A stretch of 58,534 nt of DNA, the filler included, from Dugesia japonica (Eukaryota): assembly GCA_001938525.1 (NCBI GenBank). It is 5 parts of 5 records of this genome, joined end to end, with 100 filler letters (N's around TTAATTAATTAA, not from the genome) between each part and the next. Parts side by side here need not be neighbours in the genome. Positions count along the whole stretch, not along the records: positions 18,526 to 29,673 come from MQRL01592486.1; 4 more parts are not named here. One strand, written 5' to 3'. The translations under genes were made by a program, and so were the position numbers. The first letter of the stretch is position 1, and every line of letters begins with the position of its first letter. The notes below the pieces were generated by a model. That model made no database searches, had not been told where the DNA came from, and saw only the letters and a list, made by a program, of their open reading frames with translations. Below, in pieces: positions 18,391-31,029 of this stretch.

Positions 18391-18812
18391 AAATTTAATA
18401 CTTTATTTTTTCTTTTTTCCTTATANNNNNNNNNNNNNNNNNNNNNNNNNNNNNNNNNNNNNNNNNNNNTTAATTAATTAANNNNNNNNNNNNNNNNNNN
18501 NNNNNNNNNNNNNNNNNNNNNNNNNACCCTAACCCAACCAAATACATACCATTGCTCTGTAATTAATGATACAATGTTTTGGAGTCAATGCTGGTTGTTA
18601 ACCTGTGTTCACCCATGACCTTTTGTGTTTGAAATAGATCTATCTTGCATAACTCTTTTTTGATGTCTGGCAAGCAATGATACCAAGGTGTTAAAAACGA
18701 TTCTCAATTGCACTTTAAAAAATAATGTTGAATCCGTTTTAATTATTTCTGAAACTTCCCCATCGCATGCAAACGATTTGAAATTGTTGTAGGACAGACA
18801 CATTTAGTAATA

Positions 18813-19060
18813 TTATATATTCACTAAGATTCTGAGTAGAGTCCACATCCGATAATCCTTCATAACGGCATCACTAAACCTTTTAGGCTTACCTCGGCGT
18901 GTTTTATCAACAACCTCGTGATCGCCACTTTTAAATCGTTGAAACCATTCTTTACACGTCATTTCTGATTGAGCAAAATTGTCATAAGTCTCAGACACTA
19001 TACGATAGGCTTACAATGCAGTTTTGTACATATCAAAATAGTACAGAATGGGAGCCACGT
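18813..19060 (-). pseudogene. Mos1-like mariner transposase N-terminal HTH fragment
   Basis: SETYDNFAQSEMTCKEWFQRFKSGDHEVVDKTRRGKPKRFSD. Confidence 0.85.
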
Positions 19061-19364
19061 CAAAATATTCCATCAAAAATTTTATATCAAAATTTTTGAA
19101 AAACGTNNNNNNNNNNNNNNNNNNNNNNNNNNNNNNNNNNNNNNNNNNNNNNNNNNNNNNNNNNNNNNNNNNNNNNNNNNNNNNNNNNNNAAAAAAATAA
19201 GACTTTTTTTTAAAGAAATTAAGAATTTATAGCCATTTTATGTTCAGTATCATCGCATTAATATTTGTTTAAATAATATAAACTAAATAAACTCATTTTT
19301 TCATTTTTGTCTGATGATGAAACAAATTTGATCTATAAAGTTTTGTTTTAAATGGCGTTATTTA

Positions 19365-19573
19365 TTTTGTATTAATATATTATTTTATTATATTATATTT
19401 TATATTATTAATATATAATTTTATTATATTTTATTTTATTATTATATTATATAATAATATTAAATAATTTTATTATATTATATATTATTATGTATTAATA
19501 TTATTATTATTATTATTATTATTATCATTATTATTATTTTTTAAGGATTGTTGTATTTTGTCTTGGGATTATT

Positions 19574-19622
<49 letters not shown>

Positions 19623-19785
19623 NNNNNNNNNATATATTAATAATACTATATAATATAAAATAATAATATATAATAATTTTAAATAATATATATTTCAAAA
19701 AAATTATTTAATATTATTATATAATATATTAATAATATAATATATAATATAATAAAATAATATATTAATAATAATAATTATAAAA
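19365..19785. repeat. (ATT)n/(AAT)n microsatellite and AT low-complexity tract
   Basis: Direct reading. Confidence 0.9.
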
Positions 19786-20044
19786 TTTTTGACGGGTCAC
19801 CAACAGCATGACATGTCGAAAAAACTGATTCTCGCGTTCCATGTTTTACAAACTAAAATTATGTGGTTAAGGTAACTTTGGTTTTAATTTTTCATTAAAT
19901 TATGATAGATATATAACTTAGTTTAAGTTTCGCTTTTTAAAAATATCACTCTTTATTATCAGCGGCGGTAATTATTTAAAAAAATAATGTGGTATAAAAT
20001 ATTATATAAATATATGAATACATGATATTGATATATCAAGTTAC

Positions 20045-20682
20045 TTGTTATTTTCTTTTCTAGCACAACAATTAGTTCTTCTCCAATCTCAGCAACAGTT
20101 TTCGGAGCGAGATGTTTAATTTTAATAGATTTATTTTCTTTTGAAACTAAGAAAAATAATTCTTTTATACAATTGAATTATGAAACATTAATTCAACTTT
20201 GTGATTTAATTATTTCTGAATAAATTTCGCACGCCGGTAATTCGTGCTGGAACAATGTAGCTTTCAAGCGCACAATGTCCCTATTTTGATTGAAAAATGT
20301 TTTTGCTTGAGATTCGGAAAAATGAGGATAAAGTTCTGAAATCAAGAAGCTTGGTAGAAATTTATTTAACAGATAAACTACTCACGTTTGATCAGCGGCA
20401 TAGCTTCCTTATTTTTCATTTTTCGAATACCCAATGATTCTAGTCTGAATTATATTAATTGGATAATTTAATAGTAATCAAATAAAAATCTGAATACAAT
20501 TCTATGGAAACTCGAACATTTGTTCTCATTTTTATATCATAATCCCAGTGCATTTGTTTGTACAAGAATCTATGGGGGACGCTCATATTTGATACCCACT
20601 TTGTCAAATACGCCCCTTATAGTTTTTCAAATTTAGACAATATTTATTATTTTGTACAACACTCATTCTTTTCGATATAAAA
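20045..20682 (-). CDS. Partial spliced gene or pseudogene encoding a divergent Rel homology region (RHD C-terminal half plus start of IPT/dimerisation domain)
   Basis: Exons ~20615(or 20682)-20498, 20444-20386, 20335-20198 and 20146-20045 with 53/50/51-bp GT-AG introns splice in frame to AYLTKWVSNMSVPHRFLYKQMHWDYDIKMRTNVRVSIELLESLGIRKMKNKEAMPLIKQLYPHFSESQAKTFFNQNRDIVRLKATLFQHELPACEIYSEIIKSQISKENKSIKIKHLAPKTVAEIGEELIVVLEKKIT; motif order and spacing follow Rel proteins (TK..PH...K, LGI, VRL, S..I, LKI, GDE). Confidence 0.7.
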
Positions 20683-22771
20683 CTATACAAAACCATTTTT
20701 ACAAATTGATTTTACAAAAAAATTGATTTTACAAATTGATCCATTTTTACAAAAATAAACTCTACAAATAAAGGAAATGAAACATTTTCCTTCGGGAGAC
20801 GGAGTCCCCGCGTCCCCCACAAAAATAGCCGTGCATAAATCTATATATTATACAACATAATATACAAGACTAATATCTTCTTGATACATGTAAATAAATC
20901 GATTTTTACTACATTCACAAAGAAGTGCCAAAAATTCACCATCTAATTTCCGTGTTAGTACATTTTGATTTGGTATAGCAATAATTAAAATCGTGTAATT
21001 TATCGATTTTACAATCAAAATCATTAAAACTTCTTCAGAACAGGTTTCTCCATTGTTAATTTTCAATTTTTTTAATCATAATTTTAAATTTTTCATTACT
21101 GTTTGGAAAGTATTTTAAAAATTTCGATTATTTATTGAGATAAAATTCAAACCACATTAAAACATCTAATAATTACTAATAGTAAGTGGTATTCAATTGG
21201 TTCCTTAAATTTCAAATAGAATATTGATTTATGGGCAAACTATTATAATACAATGAACTTTTAATTTTTACAAGATGTTTATTTAATCTTAGATAAATAT
21301 TAAAGCATTTTCAAATCATTTGTGTATTTGCACAATTTACATCTTGAACAACTTGATAATTTGTTGTCAGATAATTCCTGGCGAATTCATTAATTACATA
21401 ATTGCAATCACAATTTACATCATTTAAATCTCGAAATAAATTATCATTTAATTAGTATTATATTCAACCTTTGGGAACTCCAAAACTAACGATTTTGTAC
21501 TATTCAGTCATTAATTTTTGTGATAAAATCTTACTTATTATCATCGAATATTGATTGTATATATGAATTTAATTCATTTCTAATTTCTTTATAGAATTAA
21601 ATTCTATTTTTTGTAATACCTGCTTCCATTCAAACATTCCTTTCCGAATTCGTTTATTTGATAGCCCTCATTTTGATGCACAAGAAATTTCATACTAGCT
21701 CACAATCATACACATCATGTTGTATTTCACATTCGAATATCATCTGAATATAAATTTATTTTAGAAAATAATTCACTCAACTACGGTTTTGTCGTTAGGA
21801 TTACCAAAACCTAAAATCCAAAATTCTGAACATAAATACATGTTATGAGAAGTAGATTTCATCACAATATAGAATCAATAATTATTTTTCCATACCATAA
21901 CAAAAAAAATCATTCTTTTTGTAAAGTATAATGATGATTTGATCCATTTTTTTCATGGATTTATTTAGAGACGTTGAAATAATTCATAAATATAATTCTT
22001 CATAATTATTAATATAATTAATAATATTCATCATAATTAATAATATTAATAATCAATAATGATTTTTCCAAAGCATAACAAACAGTCATTGTTTGTATAA
22101 ATTATAAACATGATTTGATCCATTGTTTTTTCATGGATTTATTTATTCACATTGAAATAATTCATAAATATAATTCTTCATGATTATATTATATTCATCT
22201 CAATGTTTATTAACAATCTCATTGATTCGAGATCATTCATTATCCATCCGTATCAATAATTGATTTATTGGTATAATGATTGACATTTTACTGATATTAA
22301 ATTAGAAATCTTCATTAATTTAATTATTATTGGTTTATAAATTAGAAAAGAAACCAATGTAATTGAGACAGCAAGACTATTCAAATACAACATTATTTTT
22401 GTACAAATTTATTCTTTAGAGCAGGTGTATCCAAATCTTCAATCCGAGAACCACATTGGGTATTCCAGCATTTTTCAGCAGACGGTTGTAAAGAGAGATA
22501 AATAATCAAAGTATAGACAACAGTAAATTCAATGAAGTTAGTCATATTTTTGTGGACCTCATAAAATCTGAAGATGTTTACACTTGAAAACTTAGAAATC
22601 CATTATTTTTTGCTATATTTATTTCAAATTAAATATTATTTCAGTTTAATGCAGTTATTTTTGTTTTGTTCTCATACGTTTTCACAATGTATAATTTTAA
22701 CTCAATTGCAACTATCATTGAGCTATTTTTTATTGAATTGACGCTTACACATTTTCTTTAAGGATTTAGCT

Positions 22772-24411
22772 CAGGGGTCTCAAACTCAAAATATCTTTAG
22801 GGCCGCGTTAGATTAAATGAGTTAGTCAACTTGCCACATTTATGCTGTAACTCACTGTAACACTTTGTACCACTGTATACAACACTACTAGTAATCGTAT
22901 TGTCAAATAAACGTAGTATATTATGTTGTATTTGTTAGTTAAATCTGACAATGATTATTTATTTTCGAATTAGCTACAATTTTTTTTACATTATTAGCTA
23001 CATTGCCATTAGCTACAATTTTTCATAATCATTTCCTTATAGTCAGGGCTTAATTTCTGCCGGAATGGCATTCCGGTTCTTTTTTAAAAATATTACGTGA
23101 AAATTTTTCTTATTAGTTTTGGTTTTTCAATTCCTATTCCTATCCCTTGCTTATCAACGAAAAAAATAAAATATAATTTTTTTTNNNNNNNNNNNNNNNN
23201 NNNNNNNNNNNNNNNNNNNNNNNNNNNNNNNNNNNNNNNNNNNNNNNNNNNNNAAATTTATTCACATAGTAGGCTATATGTTTCAAAAGTAGTTAAGAAA
23301 CCAATTCTGATTGTCACTTTGATTTTGGTTTATGCCGATATCAGTTAGCTTGCGTTTAGTGTGTAATTTCGATTTTTTTAATGGAGAGTTATTGTTATTT
23401 TGTATTATATAATTAGAAATTGTCTTCTTTTATTTTGATTATTTAAGTGTTTCTTAAATGTTTTTAAGTTTTCGCTGTTTCGTAAATATTTTATATTTGC
23501 AGTTTTCCATAGTATATTATAGCATTTCTAATATTAATATTTTATATTTCTTAATTCATTTTAGTATCTTAAAGTATTTCTTATATTTTAACGACNNNNN
23601 NNNNNNNNNNNNNNNNNNNNNNNNNNNNNNNNNNNNNNNNNNNNNNNNNNNNNNNNNNNNNNNNNNNNNNNNNNNNNNNNNNNNNNNNNNNNNNNNNNNN
23701 NNNNNNNNNNNNNNNNNNNNNNNNNNNNNNNNNNNNNNNNNNNNNNNNNNNNNNNNNNNNNNNNNNNNNNNNNTTTTTTAAATCCTAAAATGTGTGTTCG
23801 CAGTTGGATAGCCAAAGGAAAACATAGTGCTCTAGACACTCAATCGAAATCTAGGAGTGCTAAAGTATATGACGAAAATATTGGGAAAATATGAAATTTA
23901 TTATAAGGTTTTTTGTATAATAAATATTTAAACTGAAATTAACTCTAACTATATTCTTTAAAATTTTAATTTTATATAAAAAATAGTAAATTAAAACACT
24001 ATTTTTCCGTGCGTTCCGATTATTTTTTTTAGAAATTAAGGTCTGCTTATAGTCATCTTATTACATGTTTAGTATATTTAGTAGACTAATTATTGCAAAC
24101 CCTAGAAATATTATTTTTAAATCAATAAAATAACTATTAAAACATTTATTCTGGAGATGACGGATATTATAACAAAAGAATTTGTTAAAATTTATTTTCT
24201 GTATTTTATCAAATATTTTATCATATTGTAATTATTGAAAAATTAAATTAATAATTATGAAATAAAAATGAAATCAAATTTCAATTAAAAGCTATAATTA
24301 TTTGCAATCAAAGTAAAGCTGTATTTGTTTCCCAGTAATTTTTGCAAAGTCCCAGTGAAACATTACGGGCCACATTGAAATACCTTACGGGTCGCATGTT
24401 TGAGACCCCTG
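22772..24411. mobile_element. hAT (Buster/Charlie-type) non-autonomous element, middle
   Basis: Perfect TIRs CAGGGGTCTCAAAC / GTTTGAGACCCCTG; TSD ATTTAGCT (22764-22771) / ATTTATCT (24412-24419). Confidence 0.88.
23044..24045. mobile_element. hAT-type MITE, innermost
   Basis: TIRs CAGGGCTTAATTTCT / AGAAATTAAGGTCTG; perfect 8-bp TSD CTTATAGT at 23036-23043 and 24046-24053. Confidence 0.88.
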
Positions 24412-24849
24412 ATTTATCTGGAAATCACTTCACTTGAAGTACAATTCCTTTACATACTGGATGAAATTATATCTCGGATTGTAAATTGGAAACCCCTGCT
24501 TTAAAGAAATNNNNNNNNNNNNNNNNNNNNNNNNNNNNNNNNNNNNNNNNNNNNNNNNNNNNNNNNNNNNNNNNNNNNNNAAAAAACCTTTTTCTTGAGT
24601 AAAAATACTATTAAGTCTAATTCTGTGCACAATTAATTAGTAGATGGTTCCAATAAATTCGAACATGCATGAAGCTTTTCTGATAAGCTGTGAATAACTT
24701 TTAAAGATATGAAAATTTACAGATAACTAAACTTTTTTTGATGTTAAAATTTTAAGATTGAACAAATTCAATTCAATGTAATACTTGCTAAAAGTGAATT
24801 AGAAACCTTTTAATTGAATGAATTTTACGATAATGATTGTTTAAATAGA

Positions 24850-25155
24850 TCTTATGTTATCCTGGAAGGTAAAGAAACGCAAGAAATGGACAAGCATACG
24901 AGAATACCAAAATTATCGCGAATACCAGTAATGATTTAAAAAAGTGCGATTTCGAGGCAAACGATTTCTGTGCATTACTGAGAAAAATAGAAAAAACTTT
25001 AATAATCAAAAAAGAAACTATTCTACATGAAGATTTACACAAAACAAAAATCTATCCCAAATGAACTAAAATTGCATATAGAAGACATCATTATAGTCAC
25101 CAGAAATTATCCAAATTTCCTGGAATCAATTGACACATGTGATGAAACGTGGCAG
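24850..25155 (+). pseudogene. Mariner transposase fragment
   Basis: IKKETILHEDLHKTKI..K and NYPNFLESIDTCDETW (first catalytic D region). Confidence 0.7.
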
Positions 25156-25807
25156 ATAGATGACATTTTTCTTGATATTTTATAGAAATGAGACTTGTAA
25201 TTTCGAATATGTACAATTTAACATATTCACTTTTTTATGGAATAAAAACTCATTCAATAATACAAAATTCAATACAGCCAACTTTGAGCACACATTTAAA
25301 TGGTATTTTTAAGCAAACTTCAAATATATTTGAAATAAAACAGAAAATATATTCAAAGTATTCGTTTTAAATACTACCGCACATTGTTAATTACAATGAG
25401 AAAACGAATTTCATTAATCGATCCATTTGGATACGTTCTCATTAAAAATTATGTGCAGCATTAAAATCATTAAAATTCGTGCAATTTTTAATTGAATGTG
25501 ATGTTATAATTATTCCCAAAATATTTGATTATGTTTAGGGTCAATAGCAAATCTTTCATTGACAGTCTTAGAATAATTTTATCTTATCTAATTGACATTT
25601 TTCGAAGACGAGTTTTCGGAAGATTATCAATATATTCACTTATCTGTAGATTACGGTTCCATTGAGTTAATTATTTTCTTGAAATGGTGAATAATTTTGA
25701 ATTAACAGTTTGACTCGACATATATTTTAACAACTTTAATGCAGCTATTTTCATTTCTATTGAATATTGAATTTCCTTACTCCAAATATTTTTCTTATTT
25801 CTGTATG

Positions 25808-26880
25808 TGTATCAAAATATTAAATAAACATTCGTTTTAAAAGTTAATAACTCTTAATCAAATAAGACACGGCATTTTTTCCGTGATCAGAAAATTGCGC
25901 ACATAAAAATTGTATGTACTAAATTCATTCAATTTTCCAAGTGCGATATTCTCATAGAACCCAATTCTTCATATTTTCATATTGTCTCTACAACGACACC
26001 ACTAAGAGTCGGAAAAGGAAGGATGTCGTATTAGAGAAACTCGACTGTATTATAATAACCAATCTAATTTTAAGGCATGAAAATTAATTATTCTTAAATT
26101 ATTTCAAATATTTCGAAGAAACTTCACTTTTTACATAAAATTATAAAGCGCTATGATATGTATGTATTAAAATATTAAATAAATATTAGTTTTAAAATTT
26201 AATAACTCTTCATAAACTAAGACACGATATTTTTCCGTGATCAAAAAACTGTGCACAAGAAAATTGTATATACTAAATTCATTAAATTTTTTTGTGCGCA
26301 ATTCTCATAAAACCCAATTCTTCATATTTATAGAAGAATCTCTCTAAAACGACATCACTAAGAGACAAGTAAAAATATCGGATTAGAGATATTTGACTGC
26401 TTAGAGATTTTATGTAATGACGATACCTTACTGTCGGATAATGCAAGGGTGTCGTATTAGAGAAATTCGACGGTATTATAATCACTAATCTAATTTTAAG
26501 GCTAGAAAATTAATGTATCAAAATATTAAATAAACATTCGTTTTAAAAGTTAATAACTCTTAATCAACTAAGACACAACATTTTTTCGAGATCAGAAAAT
26601 GGCGCACAAGAAAATTGTATTCATTAAATTCATTAAATTTTCCAAGTGCGCAATTCTCAAAGAACCCAATTCTCATAGAATCCAATTCTTCATATTTACA
26701 GTAGAACCGCTCTAAAACGACACACTAAGAGTCGGAAAAGGAAGGATATAGTAATAGAGAAATCCGACTGTATTATAATAACCAATCTAATTTTAAGGCA
26801 TGAAAATTAATTATTCTTAAATTATTTCAAAAATTTCGAAGAAACTTCACTTTTTTTCAAAAAATTATTAAGCGCTATGA
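25808..26880. repeat. Three tandem copies of a ~350-bp unit
   Basis: Units start ~25808, ~26163 and ~26514 (TGTATCAAAATATTAAATAAACATTCGTTTTAAAAGTTAATAACTCTT...); copy 2 carries an internal partial duplication. Confidence 0.88.
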
Positions 26881-27481
26881 TATATATATAAATGATTATT
26901 CTTAATAGAGCTGAAATAAATGATTTCACAAATATGAATGAAATTTACTTAATTTTTTGCTGTCCGATATTAGGAAGTCCCACTTGAAAGATCCCATTTC
27001 GCAATGTACTATTATGAAGCTTATCTTTAGGAACATCATAAAACATATTAAAATGAGGAGATCTTTCAGTATCTGTTACCAATTCTATTTGCAATATTGC
27101 ATCTTCACATGTCGACGTTACCTAAAAAAANNNNNNNNNNNNNNNNNNNNNNNNNNNNNNNNNCGATATCAAATTCTTCTTTTTTCATTTTTTTCAATAT
27201 TTCGGCTTATTGAAATATATGAAAAAGAGAAGAACAACAATTCTGATCTTTTGCTTTTAAAACATTTTATTTTAAATAAAATTGTTTATTTAGTTATTTT
27301 TACAGATCAGTAGTTAAAATTTTTGTAAAAAAAGATTTATTTTAATGTTGGCAAACAATTAACTGTGAATATTTTCAATGAATTCAAAATTATAAAAAGT
27401 ATCCAATGAAAATTGAATTTAATCAAATGAATTTAATTTTAATTGTTATTTCAAAGTTTATAATCAAAATTTACTGAACTA

Positions 27482-27518
27482 TTGTTCCTGAAGAAGGCAA
27501 AGCCGAAATATTGAAAAA
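27482..27518 (+). ncRNA. Minimal type I hammerhead ribozyme motif (second subfamily)
   Basis: TTGTTC-CTGAAGA-A-GGC-AAA-GCC-GAAA-TA-TT-GAAAAA: intact core, 3-bp stem II, palindromic ATAT helix III; inverted partial copy at ~27170-27208 and related degenerate copy at ~55840-55945. Confidence 0.65.
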
Positions 27519-27635
27519 ATGAAAAAAAGAAGAACCATTCTGATCTTTTGNNNNNNNNNNNNNNNNNNNNNNNNNNNNNNNNNNNNNNNNNNNNNNNNNN
27601 NNNNNNNNNNNNNNNNNNNNNNNNNNNNNNNNNNN

Positions 27636-28015
27636 ATGCTGGACAAGCAAACTCGCATCGCCATATCAATCACATGTAGCCGCTCAAGTTTATTAGATTT
27701 AATATCTGTTAATGTAGAAAATCCTTGTTCATGCAGATAGGAAGAACCATATGGTATCAAAGCTGGAATAGCTCTTGTACTCAATTCAGGATATTGACTA
27801 TGGAGGAAAATCCAGAACGTTGATAATTCTAGTTATGAAAAATAAGCTTTATGAATTAAATCATTCTTTAGATCGATTAAATCTTCTTCTTCCTTTGTTG
27901 AAAATGAATAAGTATAATTACTTATAAAATGGTTGAAAACCCATTCATCTAGTTTCGCATTGAGAGACGGAAAATATTTATAAAATGACGACAGCAAATT
28001 TTGGAAAGTGATTTG
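27636..28015 (-). pseudogene. hAT Buster/Charlie transposase C-terminal dimerisation region
   Basis: FWIFLHSQYPELSTRAIPALIPYGSSYLHEQGFSTLTDIKSNKLERLHVIDMAMRVCLSS. Confidence 0.85.
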
Positions 28016-28109
28016 AATTTGATTTTTTTTTGATTTTTTGAAAGTGATTTTTTTGAATAAAGAAAACCAATTTTAGTGTTAATCCAGAGTAATGTCAATT
28101 CCTGCGAGA

Positions 28110-28330
28110 CGAAATCAAATTTTCGGAAAACGTTATTAGTAAGGAAGGTGTCAAAACAGAGCCAACCAAAATAGAAGCAATAAAGAACTTTGGTAAACCA
28201 AAATGTGTAAAGACAATGAGAAGCTTTTGGGTATATGTATTTGCTATCGCAGATTCATTAAAGACTATTCAAAGAAAGTTAGATTATTAGAACAACTATG
28301 TAGTGGACCTAGTAACAAGAAGATTAGATA
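28110..28330 (+). pseudogene. Gypsy RT C-terminal fragment
   Basis: EIKF...ISKEGVKTEPTKIEAIKNFGKPKCVKTMRSF; YRRFIKDYSK. Confidence 0.8.
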
Positions 28331-28354
28331 AGCGAATGAATTAAAAGTTTTAAA

Positions 28355-28516
28355 ATTCAATTCCTGAAGACAATAATCGAAAATTCGGAAAACCATCATA
28401 AAAGAAATAAAAAGAAACAAAACAACATATTCATCGAATCTTTTAATTTAATGAAATCTCAAATGCGATCAATAATCATGTCCAACAATTAATCTCATAA
28501 TAATTGTAATTGTAAA
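28355..28516 (+). mobile_element. Degenerate single-arm copy of the hammerhead/tail family
   Basis: CAATTC-CTGAAGA..AATC-GAAA-AT-TC followed by TTAATGAAATCTC and the family tail. Confidence 0.7.
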
Positions 28517-31029
28517 AATTATTTTATTGAAAATATTCTTATATTCTCTTTTGCTTTTAATTCGGACAAGCTTAAAAGAAAACTGTTAGTATTTTCGATC
28601 CGTTTTTTATTATTTTTAATAATAATAATAAAAATAATGACAGCATATTTATTATCATAATTATTTTGTAATTATTAAGCTTTTACAATTATAATAAATA
28701 TAGAATATTTATTGTTATTTATTTATATAATGTTTAAAATTTTGAAAATTTTTTTATTCGAAGATTATTGTTGAAAATTAGGAAATTTAAAAACAAAATT
28801 TTGATCTGTGCTTTTAATTTTTACAAAATAATTGCTAATGTTTAATTATTTCTTATAATTATTAATTGTTAACATTATTTTTAAACATTTCTAGAAAACT
28901 TTTCGGATTTATTGTAGTATTAAAAGCCATGCATTTTGTGTTTGAAAGCAAAATAGTTCATTGGATATTATTTAAATAATTTATTTACTCGACAAAATAT
29001 TTAACTTGACAAAAAACTGCTAGTAGATTTATATATAACATAAGTTTTTGGACAAATTTTTATCATTACTTGATGCATTTAGAGCTCAAAACTTTGTCTT
29101 TCTTATTATTTTAATTTTCTGTCTAAAGATTCTTGTGTTTTGAATATTTTTATAAATATTTTAAAAATTTTAGTAATTTTATAATATTTCTTATTCATGA
29201 TATTATTGTATAATTATTCTTTATAAAAATAATTTTACCATTACAACAATAAGCAAAATTTTATAAAACACGTAGGCAATTTTCGGTAAAATATGTAAAG
29301 AAATTTATTAATCAAAACCTTTTTATTAAATAGATGTTTATTGTAGCCAAATAATGATATTATAGTTAAATTAAAACCTTGGATACATACTATTGATTTT
29401 GCTATAAAGCTAATTTGAATTTTCAATTGGTTAAAATTGTTTCTATTTATATCAAATGGAAAATCGACTAAAATTTAAAATGATAAATTTTACAATAGAA
29501 CGATTAAATTACAGAATTAACATACAATAAACTTTAGCATTATTTGACGCAAATAATATCTTTGTAAACACTTGTTATTAATTTTAGTAATAATAATTAT
29601 AATAATAATAATAATATTAATAATAATAATAATATTAATAATAATAACAAAAATAATAAATAATAATTACAATNNNNNNNNNNNNNNNNNNNNNNNNNNN
29701 NNNNNNNNNNNNNNNNNTTAATTAATTAANNNNNNNNNNNNNNNNNNNNNNNNNNNNNNNNNNNNNNNNNNNNAATATTTTCTCGTCGTTGAATTTGTTG
29801 ACTATAATTTACATATCATTCAATGATAATAAGTTTCTTTAAGCATGAATTCAGAAATTAAAATAAAATAAGAATATTAAGATGTCCAACATAAATGAAA
29901 GAGGTTCCTCAGTGACACTCGTACTAAAACGAAGCAATAAATAATACTCAACTAGAATGATTGATTGATTAAATCTTGATTAAATCTAGCTCTGCCTCTG
30001 CAAAGAAAAAAAAATAAAACATTTCAATCCCACAGTGATATACATCTCACCAGAATCTAATTTCTCATAAAAAAATAACCAAATTAATACGCATTATTTA
30101 TTGAATTAATGATTCTATTTTGACGATCACGGGGTCTCGTACCTCGGTCGTGACCCCAGTGTCGTCTATTGTTTTAAGTTTGAGTCGTTCGATGGCTTGC
30201 CAGTAATTGACTAGACACATGGATATCTCCCACCAGCTCGCGTATCTCTATTTGCACTTGAGTTATTTCACTTTTGAGCCGTTGATTGTCGTTTTGGAGC
30301 TCCTGTTTGTTTTTCATCAGTTCCCAAATTTTTTGAATCAGTACTTTATCTCTGTTTTGTCTTTATCATGAACTAATTTCTGCTCACCCATCAATTCCAC
30401 CACGTTCCACGGGATCCAGAATGTTCCCTCATCTCCTTCATTAGAAAGCACAAGCGGGATATGCGGTTTAAAATATATCATTTTAAATTATCTATTAAAA
30501 ATAAATTTATAGATTTTCCTGATATGAATGTTGAATAGAAATTTAAGCAGATAATGAAAAATATAAGATAAATAAACAGTTGACGTTTCTTTGGCCTGCG
30601 GCTTATCGGTTCTTCTTCCACCACTTCTATAATACAAACCATAAAAGATGTCCACTAAAGCAGTCATCTTTCCTAGTTTGTACTACTTCGAAGCTCTACT
30701 ACGAACTCCCTATCAGCTTATTTCAGAAGAAATGCATAATAACAGTCTGATTATAAACTATCACTGATAATAATATTGAATGAAGATCCTAAATTTACTT
30801 TCTAATAAATGTTATTTAATAAATAAAATTAAGTGATAAAATCATTCAACACTGAAACTTAATATTTTCTTCAAATTATTAAATTATACCACGAAAATAT
30901 TTTAGAACAATCATAAATAAAATTATTCGACTAATTTCAAGCGTAAAAAATGAAAATGAACATAATAAAAAAAATTTTTGATCAACGAAAACCAGATCAT
31001 AATTCTTAATAATCGAGCTCCCATCAAAT

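Follow-up and report, generated by a model that had tools for sequence, protein, structure and literature searches.

The window was a stretch of DNA of 58,534 nucleotides, filler included, and the locus was located in one 11-kb piece of it (positions 18,526 to 29,673, record MQRL01592486.1). A preliminary description of this DNA placed four exons on the minus strand, separated by introns of 53, 50 and 51 bases, which spliced to an open peptide of 139 aa with a GTAACT donor after it. The peptide was taken for part of a Rel-homology-domain (RHD) gene. The layout of the locus was evaluated by comparison with P0002 (UniParc UPI00060BCC3C), a database protein of 267 aa that forms a singleton cluster. 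The positions, the GT..AG introns and the open frame of the earlier model were reproduced, whereas its first exon (exon 1 below) and the donor of that exon at 20497 were not upheld. The homologous upstream exon (exon A) was situated about 6.5 kb further upstream. The features of the piece are as follows.

28093-28330, plus strand: retrotransposon pol-like fragment, recognised by eye, reverse-transcriptase to RNase H connection; no Pfam match
27638-27997, minus strand: remnant of a hAT-transposase C-terminus (..YGSSYLHEQGFSTLTDIKSNKLERL..); Pfam Dimer_Tnp_hAT at 27638-27832, E 0.022, 15 bits, below the cut-off
26949..27121, minus strand: exon A, the upstream exon supported by homology; 57 codons and 2 extra bases, corresponding to about residues 63-121 of P0002, in the RHD N-terminal domain
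20445..26948, minus strand: putative long intron between exon A and exon 2, about 6.5 kb
20498..20616, minus strand: exon 1 of the preliminary description, an open stretch with 'VPHRFLYK', without support as RHD coding sequence
20386..20444, minus strand: exon 2 (LESLGIRKMKNKEAMPLIK), carrying the 'LGI..K.K' element, part of the N-terminal domain of the RHD
20336..20385, minus strand: intron 2, 50 bases, GTGAGT..TTTCAG, junction confirmed by gapless alignment to P0002
20198..20335, minus strand: exon 3, encoding a predicted helical insert and then NRDIVRL (linker arginine motif); the second domain begins here (ELPACEIYSEIIKSQ)
20147..20197, minus strand: intron 3, 51 bases, GTTGAA..TCTTAG, junction KSQ/ISKENK as in P0002 184-190
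20045..20146, minus strand: exon 4 (SKENKSIKIKHLAPKTVAEIGEELIVVLEKKIT), first strands of the presumed IPT/dimerisation domain
18526..19870, minus strand: decayed mariner-type transposon with frame breaks; Pfam HTH_48 (Mos1 transposase HTH) at 18816-19010, E 2e-6, 28.3 bits against a cut-off of 24.1

Exon A and exons 2-4 gave a 157-aa model, in which all 157 codons were read without a stop or frameshift, the splice sites were canonical and all eight splice signals were intact. Exon A was bounded by the acceptor TTTTTTTAG and the donor GTAAAT, and it ended in phase 2, which was the phase required by exon 2. A run of N was found 10 bases upstream of this exon, and its peptide carried ELVT....SPHFNMFYDVPKDK and ..LQIELVTDTERSPHFNMFYDVPKDK... 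The putative long intron contained repeats and N runs throughout and enclosed both exon 1 and intron 1 of the earlier model. The 3' boundary of exon 4 was ambiguous, being either the GTAACT donor at 20044 or, after read-through, a GTATTC about 30 bases further. The G+C content was 28-37% in the exons, 17-30% in the introns and 24.5% in the 11-kb piece as a whole, and it was highest at first codon positions. This contrast between exons and introns was as expected for coding sequence.

The weight of the spliced open frame itself was evaluated by a chain search over the whole 11-kb piece, in which the longest open chain allowed by any GT..AG introns of 45-60 bases was recorded. The longest chain in the real piece was at this locus (183 aa), and chains elsewhere reached 123-138 aa. 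Among 60 dinucleotide-preserving shuffles of the piece, the best chain was at least 139 aa in 26 and at least 183 aa in 3. Because an equally long chain was obtained in 26 of the 60 shuffles, the spliced open frame alone was no more than chance and was weak evidence. The locus was nevertheless taken as real because exons 2-4 were homologous to P0002.

The search of exon 3 alone (45 aa) against 1.84 billion protein representatives retrieved P0002 with an E value of 3.3e-8, the whole exon being aligned at 56% identity. P0001 and P0003 were also listed by this search; they were long, internally repetitive proteins that matched through their repeats, and were rejected as spurious. Exons 2-4, which correspond to residues 43-139 of the 139-aa peptide, were aligned to residues 122-218 of P0002 without gaps (67/97 identical, 69%, E 4e-47). 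The alignment crossed junction 2 straight (..LIKQ/LYPHF.. in the window, ..RIKELYPKM.. in P0002), and the letters at junction 3 (KSQ/ISKENK) were the same in both. Since the gapless colinear alignment spanned both junctions, junctions 2 and 3 and the reading frame were confirmed, at the level of sequence, by colinearity with P0002. Moreover, exon 2 contained 12 consecutive residues identical to P0002 123-134, exon 4 was 82% identical to P0002 186-218, and the strings LGIRKMKNKEAM, KSQISKENK and VLEKKIT were common to the window and P0002. The whole 157-aa model was aligned to P0002 73-218 with one-residue gaps only (92/148 identical, 62%, E 2e-62). The replacements were conservative, with 79-85% positives at 62-69% identity.

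The upstream part of the model was carried by exon A. A tblastn search with P0002 located this exon at 49% identity (E 2e-9), and its Smith-Waterman score against P0002, 110, was reached by none of 5000 shuffles. P0002 was also compared by phmmer --max with all 607 stop-free stretches of the piece, of which four matched: exon 3 (E 1.4e-15), exon 4 (E 1.7e-13), exon A (E 1.3e-10) and exon 2 (E 4.9e-4 for the 19-aa piece alone). An ESM Atlas search with exon A alone gave no usable match. According to the phase compatibility and the colinear alignment (..QQKIK/LESLGIRK.. in the window, ..YEIKLDLGIRK.. in P0002), we infer that exon A is joined to exon 2 across the 6.5-kb intron.

P0002 was the sole real homologue in the databases searched. 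No further relative of it was found in a collection of 5.8 billion proteins, no encoding contig was found, and two metagenome scans of JGI contigs, one with a protein query and one with a degenerate LGIRKMKNKEAM pattern, were both empty. P0002 is a different gene or species from that of the window, the two sharing about two thirds of their residues. It has an FRFRYQSE loop near its N-terminus and extends C-terminally by about 50 more residues, and both of these parts were missing from the piece.

The membership of this gene in the RHD family was explored through P0002. P0002 passed the Pfam RHD_DNA_bind profile with 32.2 bits (E 1.3e-7) against a curated gathering cut-off of 27 bits, residues 30-149 being matched to profile positions 6-122 of 169, and its precomputed annotation in the protein collection was also PF00554. 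Residues 35-43 of P0002 read G-F-R-F-R-Y-Q-S-E, a recognition loop of the Rel type. Most of the RHD_DNA_bind score came from this loop region, which was missing from the window, and residues 1-125 scored 21 bits. With the loop removed, residues 44-160 still matched profile positions 33-114 (E 0.007), and hence the part common to the window and P0002 added to the RHD score. In the ESM Atlas feature search, whole P0002 was placed with RHD clusters at 0.92 with 194 shared features, and the ten best named matches were all of one family. Residues 150-267 were nearest to RHD_dimer/TIG clusters (0.87-0.90), a result to be read as a lead only.

The direct searches with the window sequences were negative. 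The preliminary description had called for a profile check of the spliced peptide itself, and hmmscan of the window exons, the 139-aa peptide and exon A returned no Pfam family at E values up to 10. The window peptide matched no Rel or NFAT chain among PDB sequences at E up to 10, the only match being a chance one of 14 bits to Alr3090, and a word-indexed search of 5.8 billion proteins with the 139-aa peptide returned nothing. P0002 likewise had no pairwise match to any Rel or NFAT chain in the PDB at E up to 10, and no Pfam RHD_dimer or TIG match was found in it at E up to 10. Because the window's own peptide matches no profile, its RHD membership holds by transitivity, through P0002. On this comparison of sequences, the window exons very probably represent RHD-family coding sequence, and the core of the earlier call, a cryptic and highly divergent RHD gene broken by micro-introns, was therefore right.

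The order of elements was also compared with that of known Rel proteins, for which RelA and p50 were the source of the motif order. In these proteins, a helical insert lies between the LGI..K and VRL elements. The single-sequence AF2 model of P0002 was unusable as a structure (pLDDT 34.6), and its only two helices (residues 130-140 and 146-156) were placed between the same two elements. In the window, the order LGI..K.K, helix, VRL, S..I, IKI and GEE.I.VL.KK followed the RHD order. Six Rel motif matches had been described in the 139-aa peptide. Three of them were in the homology-confirmed exons 2 and 3 and were retained, and two were in the presumed dimerisation domain and have the standing of leads. 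The sixth, 'LTK..VPHRFLYK' as the PH motif, was rejected with the exon that contains it; the counterpart, ELVT....SPHFNMFY, was found in exon A at 27121-26949, 6.5 kb upstream.

P0002 resembled the Rel/NF-kB/Dorsal/Relish class (PF00554 and PF16179) in passing RHD_DNA_bind and in carrying the FRFRY..E loop, the LGI..K.K element, the helical insert, and the A/I-V-R-L linker motif, with a presumed Ig-like second half following in the Rel order. However, it was extremely divergent from this class, as no solved Rel protein was matched pairwise and RHD_dimer was undetected by profile. The C-E-G that follows the loop in the Rel class was replaced by S-E-I, and P0002 was very short, without ankyrin repeats, a glycine-rich region or a transactivation domain. 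NFAT and NFAT5 (TonEBP) share the two-domain RHD architecture, and the resemblance of LGIRKMKNKE to an NFAT motif had suggested a mixed Rel/NFAT character. The NFAT recognition loop is of the R-A-H-Y-E-T-E-G type, whereas the loop of P0002 is FRFRYQSE, and the nearest named Atlas clusters were Rel/RelB-like and not NFAT. By its loop sequence, P0002 is nearer to the Rel/NF-kB class than to NFAT. The mixed character was not borne out, as no NFAT-specific evidence was found.

Both ends of the gene were missing from the piece, in agreement with the earlier statement that neither the recognition loop nor the remainder of the IPT domain was present. The 11-kb piece contained neither an R.RY nor an F[RK]F[RK]Y motif, and the most permissive loop pattern yielded a single, unrelated match (RLRF, 25648, plus strand). 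Residues 1-75 and 215-267 of P0002 matched none of the stop-free stretches of the piece by phmmer --max. The loop may lie outside the piece or within an N run; more generally, the loop exons and the end of the dimerisation domain are presumably situated beyond the piece edges or beyond the mariner insertion. Missing ends are expected in a piece of only 11 kb. Two candidates for a decayed loop exon, at 21075-20851 ('NRFIYMYQED') and in a G+C-rich island at 20772-20891, were considered and rejected, having neither a Pfam nor a P0002 match.

The reading that best accounts for these results is an intact, expressed gene of a very divergent RHD type with the exon A model, to which we assign a probability of about 0.6. 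The 157 residues of exons A, 2, 3 and 4 would cover the N-terminal DNA-binding domain of the RHD in its second half and continue through the helical insert and the linker with its conserved V-R-L arginine into the first strands of the IPT/dimerisation domain. The full protein would have two Ig-like domains, dimerise via the second and clamp kappaB-like DNA sites. Candidate DNA contacts are the arginines of the recognition loop, the lysines in LGIRKMKNK and the arginine of the linker. Because the homologue shows no ankyrin or transactivation region, the protein may act as a minimal subunit of the p50 type. That the gene is complete and expressed, and that its protein binds DNA and dimerises, are predictions. 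This DNA was contained in 20 sequencing runs from nine studies, none of which was on record as RNA.

Alternatively, the exons could be a dead fragment: an incomplete or decaying RHD gene copy of divergent type, stranded in transposon-rich DNA and without expression or translation. In that case exon A might even be the remnant of one copy and exons 2-4 that of another. The N-terminal loop and the C-terminal exons are not in the piece, a mariner remnant begins about 180 bases past exon 4 and runs off the piece edge, and a hAT-like remnant and repeat families surround exon A. Moreover, the gap between exon A and exon 2 is 6.5 kb where the other introns are about 50 bases, and the protein collections searched gave no protein of this organism. 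All of this would suit a decaying copy. Against it stand 157 codons in four exons without a stop or frameshift, eight intact splice signals, an exon A whose phase fits exon 2, and 62-69% identity to P0002 with conservative replacements (79-85% positives), and missing ends are to be expected in a piece of this size. The repeat-rich setting fits a transposon-swollen intron or a decaying copy alike, and the mariner remnant probably sits within the next intron. A dead fragment is therefore regarded as rather unlikely, and the intact gene remains the preferred reading.

The earlier model could also be correct as it stood, with exon 1 (20616-20498) as the true first exon or as an alternative one that starts at an ATG near 20586 and gives an N-terminally truncated isoform without the DNA-recognition loop. 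The frame of exon 1 is open and ends in phase 2, which fits exon 2 via a 53-base GT..AG intron; it contains the in-frame ATG, and its P-H..F/L-Y string loosely resembles SPHFNMFY. However, no significant similarity was detected, as the score of exon 1 was reached by 1281 of 5000 shuffles against P0002 and by 3797 of 5000 against exon A, and exon 1 was absent from the phmmer --max matches of P0002 among the 607 stretches. Its donor, GTATTC, is weaker than the GTAAAT of exon A, open stretches of at least 50 codons are common in the piece (36 were counted), and a far better homologous exon is available in the right phase. Accordingly, the acceptor of intron 1 at 20445/20444 is supported and its donor at 20497 is unsupported, and the earlier model is decidedly improbable. 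The G+C content of exon 1 is 37%, within the top 3% of 119-base windows outside exons, and is not ordinary background. Because of this high value, room is left for an alternative or decayed exon at 20498..20616, and three readings of the stretch are possible: an open frame by chance, a first exon used alternatively, or an exon in decay. Tandem duplication of exon A with its intron and exon 1 with its intron was also considered and rejected, the similarity of the two introns being at background level (reached by 469 of 2000 shuffles and by 20% of genomic windows).

Finally, that the Pfam match of P0002 is a false positive from a short FRFRY-like string, the window peptide belonging to an unrelated family or to chance frames, is very improbable: although P0002 and the window peptide lack a pairwise match to solved Rel or NFAT chains, RHD_dimer is undetected and open spliced chains this long arise by chance, the colinear homology (E 2e-62) excludes chance frames, the Pfam score is above the curated cut-off over 120 residues and persists without the loop, an independent feature search puts both halves of P0002 among RHD and RHD_dimer/TIG clusters, and the elements from LGI..K.K to GEE.I.VL.KK are in the RHD order.

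Rel/NF-kB factors are central immune and stress transcription factors of animals. A gene this divergent is missed by pairwise searches and by ORF lists, and only its relative is recognised by a profile; since both kinds of search fail on it, the window gene shows how such factors get missed. Its AT-rich genome, short introns and mariner and hAT elements fit the earlier guess that the host is a flatworm. For Schmidtea mediterranea, a planarian, a set of seven RHD genes of high divergence and with long branches was described together with a conserved NFAT5 (PMC13563047, Development 2026). No clear NF-kB homologue was found there, clear planarian NF-kB homologues have been hard to find, and knock-down of the most Relish-like RHD gene was lethal (PMC13563047). 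Furthermore, p50/p105 proteins were reported absent from Platyhelminthes and Nematoda (PMC11432056). The likeness of the window gene to the Schmidtea genes, all being highly divergent RHD genes, is one of description only. If the host is a planarian, the window gene is probably one of this divergent Schmidtea-type set or a further member of it.

The RHD family is already known, and the window gene is no new kind in any host. The claim of an overlooked family was accordingly weakened, by the database relative P0002 and by the seven Schmidtea genes. The value of the finding is limited in that the UniParc relative already has an automatic RHD annotation, the divergent planarian RHD genes were noted in 2026 and only the middle of the gene is in the piece. 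If the gene is intact and expressed, it is a concrete candidate for knock-down and DNA-binding assays. On a more far-reaching reading, P0002 and the window gene would together form a compact RHD subfamily specific to one lineage, an AT-rich invertebrate phylum (flatworms or nematodes) from which p50/p105-type NF-kB has been reported missing. The gene would then be intact and expressed, and adjoining sequence would contain the exons not found here; its targets would be kappaB-like sites, and it would serve as that lineage's "missing" NF-kB-like effector in innate-immune or stress signalling. This reading is unlikely and is put forward as speculation. The Atlas clusters nearest to P0002 also included several large clusters of rotifer "hypothetical proteins", in which only 14-58% of the members had a Pfam domain of the RHD kind, a hint that Rotifera likewise have expanded RHD families of great divergence.

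Several other features were observed in the surroundings of the gene. The mariner remnant had a MERENQFFRHVMLL-like start near 19842, followed by a low-complexity insertion and N runs and then by the HTH_48 match. Long AT low-complexity tracts of the TAA/TTA type (poly-L, poly-I and poly-Y) occurred at 19540-19800 around a 9-base N run. A search of 19800-23180 against Rfam returned nothing. At 20772-20891 on the minus strand, 150 bases upstream of exon 1, an isolated G+C-rich island (gtgggggacgcggggactccgtctcccgaagg) was embedded in DNA of about 25% G+C; it contained one open frame (..VGDAGTPSPEGK..), for which no P0002 or Pfam match was found. The hAT-like remnant was interrupted by an N run at 27551-27635, and the pol-like fragment read ..ISKEGVKTEPTKIEAIKNFGKPK..RSF.., then a frame shift, then ..YRRFIKDYSK... 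A unit of about 178 bases was duplicated in tandem at 21873-22187, where repeat-scan families D2, D4 and D6 were found at 82-92% identity. Between 25861 and 26810, within the putative long intron and close to exon A on its downstream side, a unit of about 280-300 bases was repeated in three copies, among which translated strings such as ..YKYEELGFMRIA.. and ..NEFNEYNFLVRHFLI.. were conserved.
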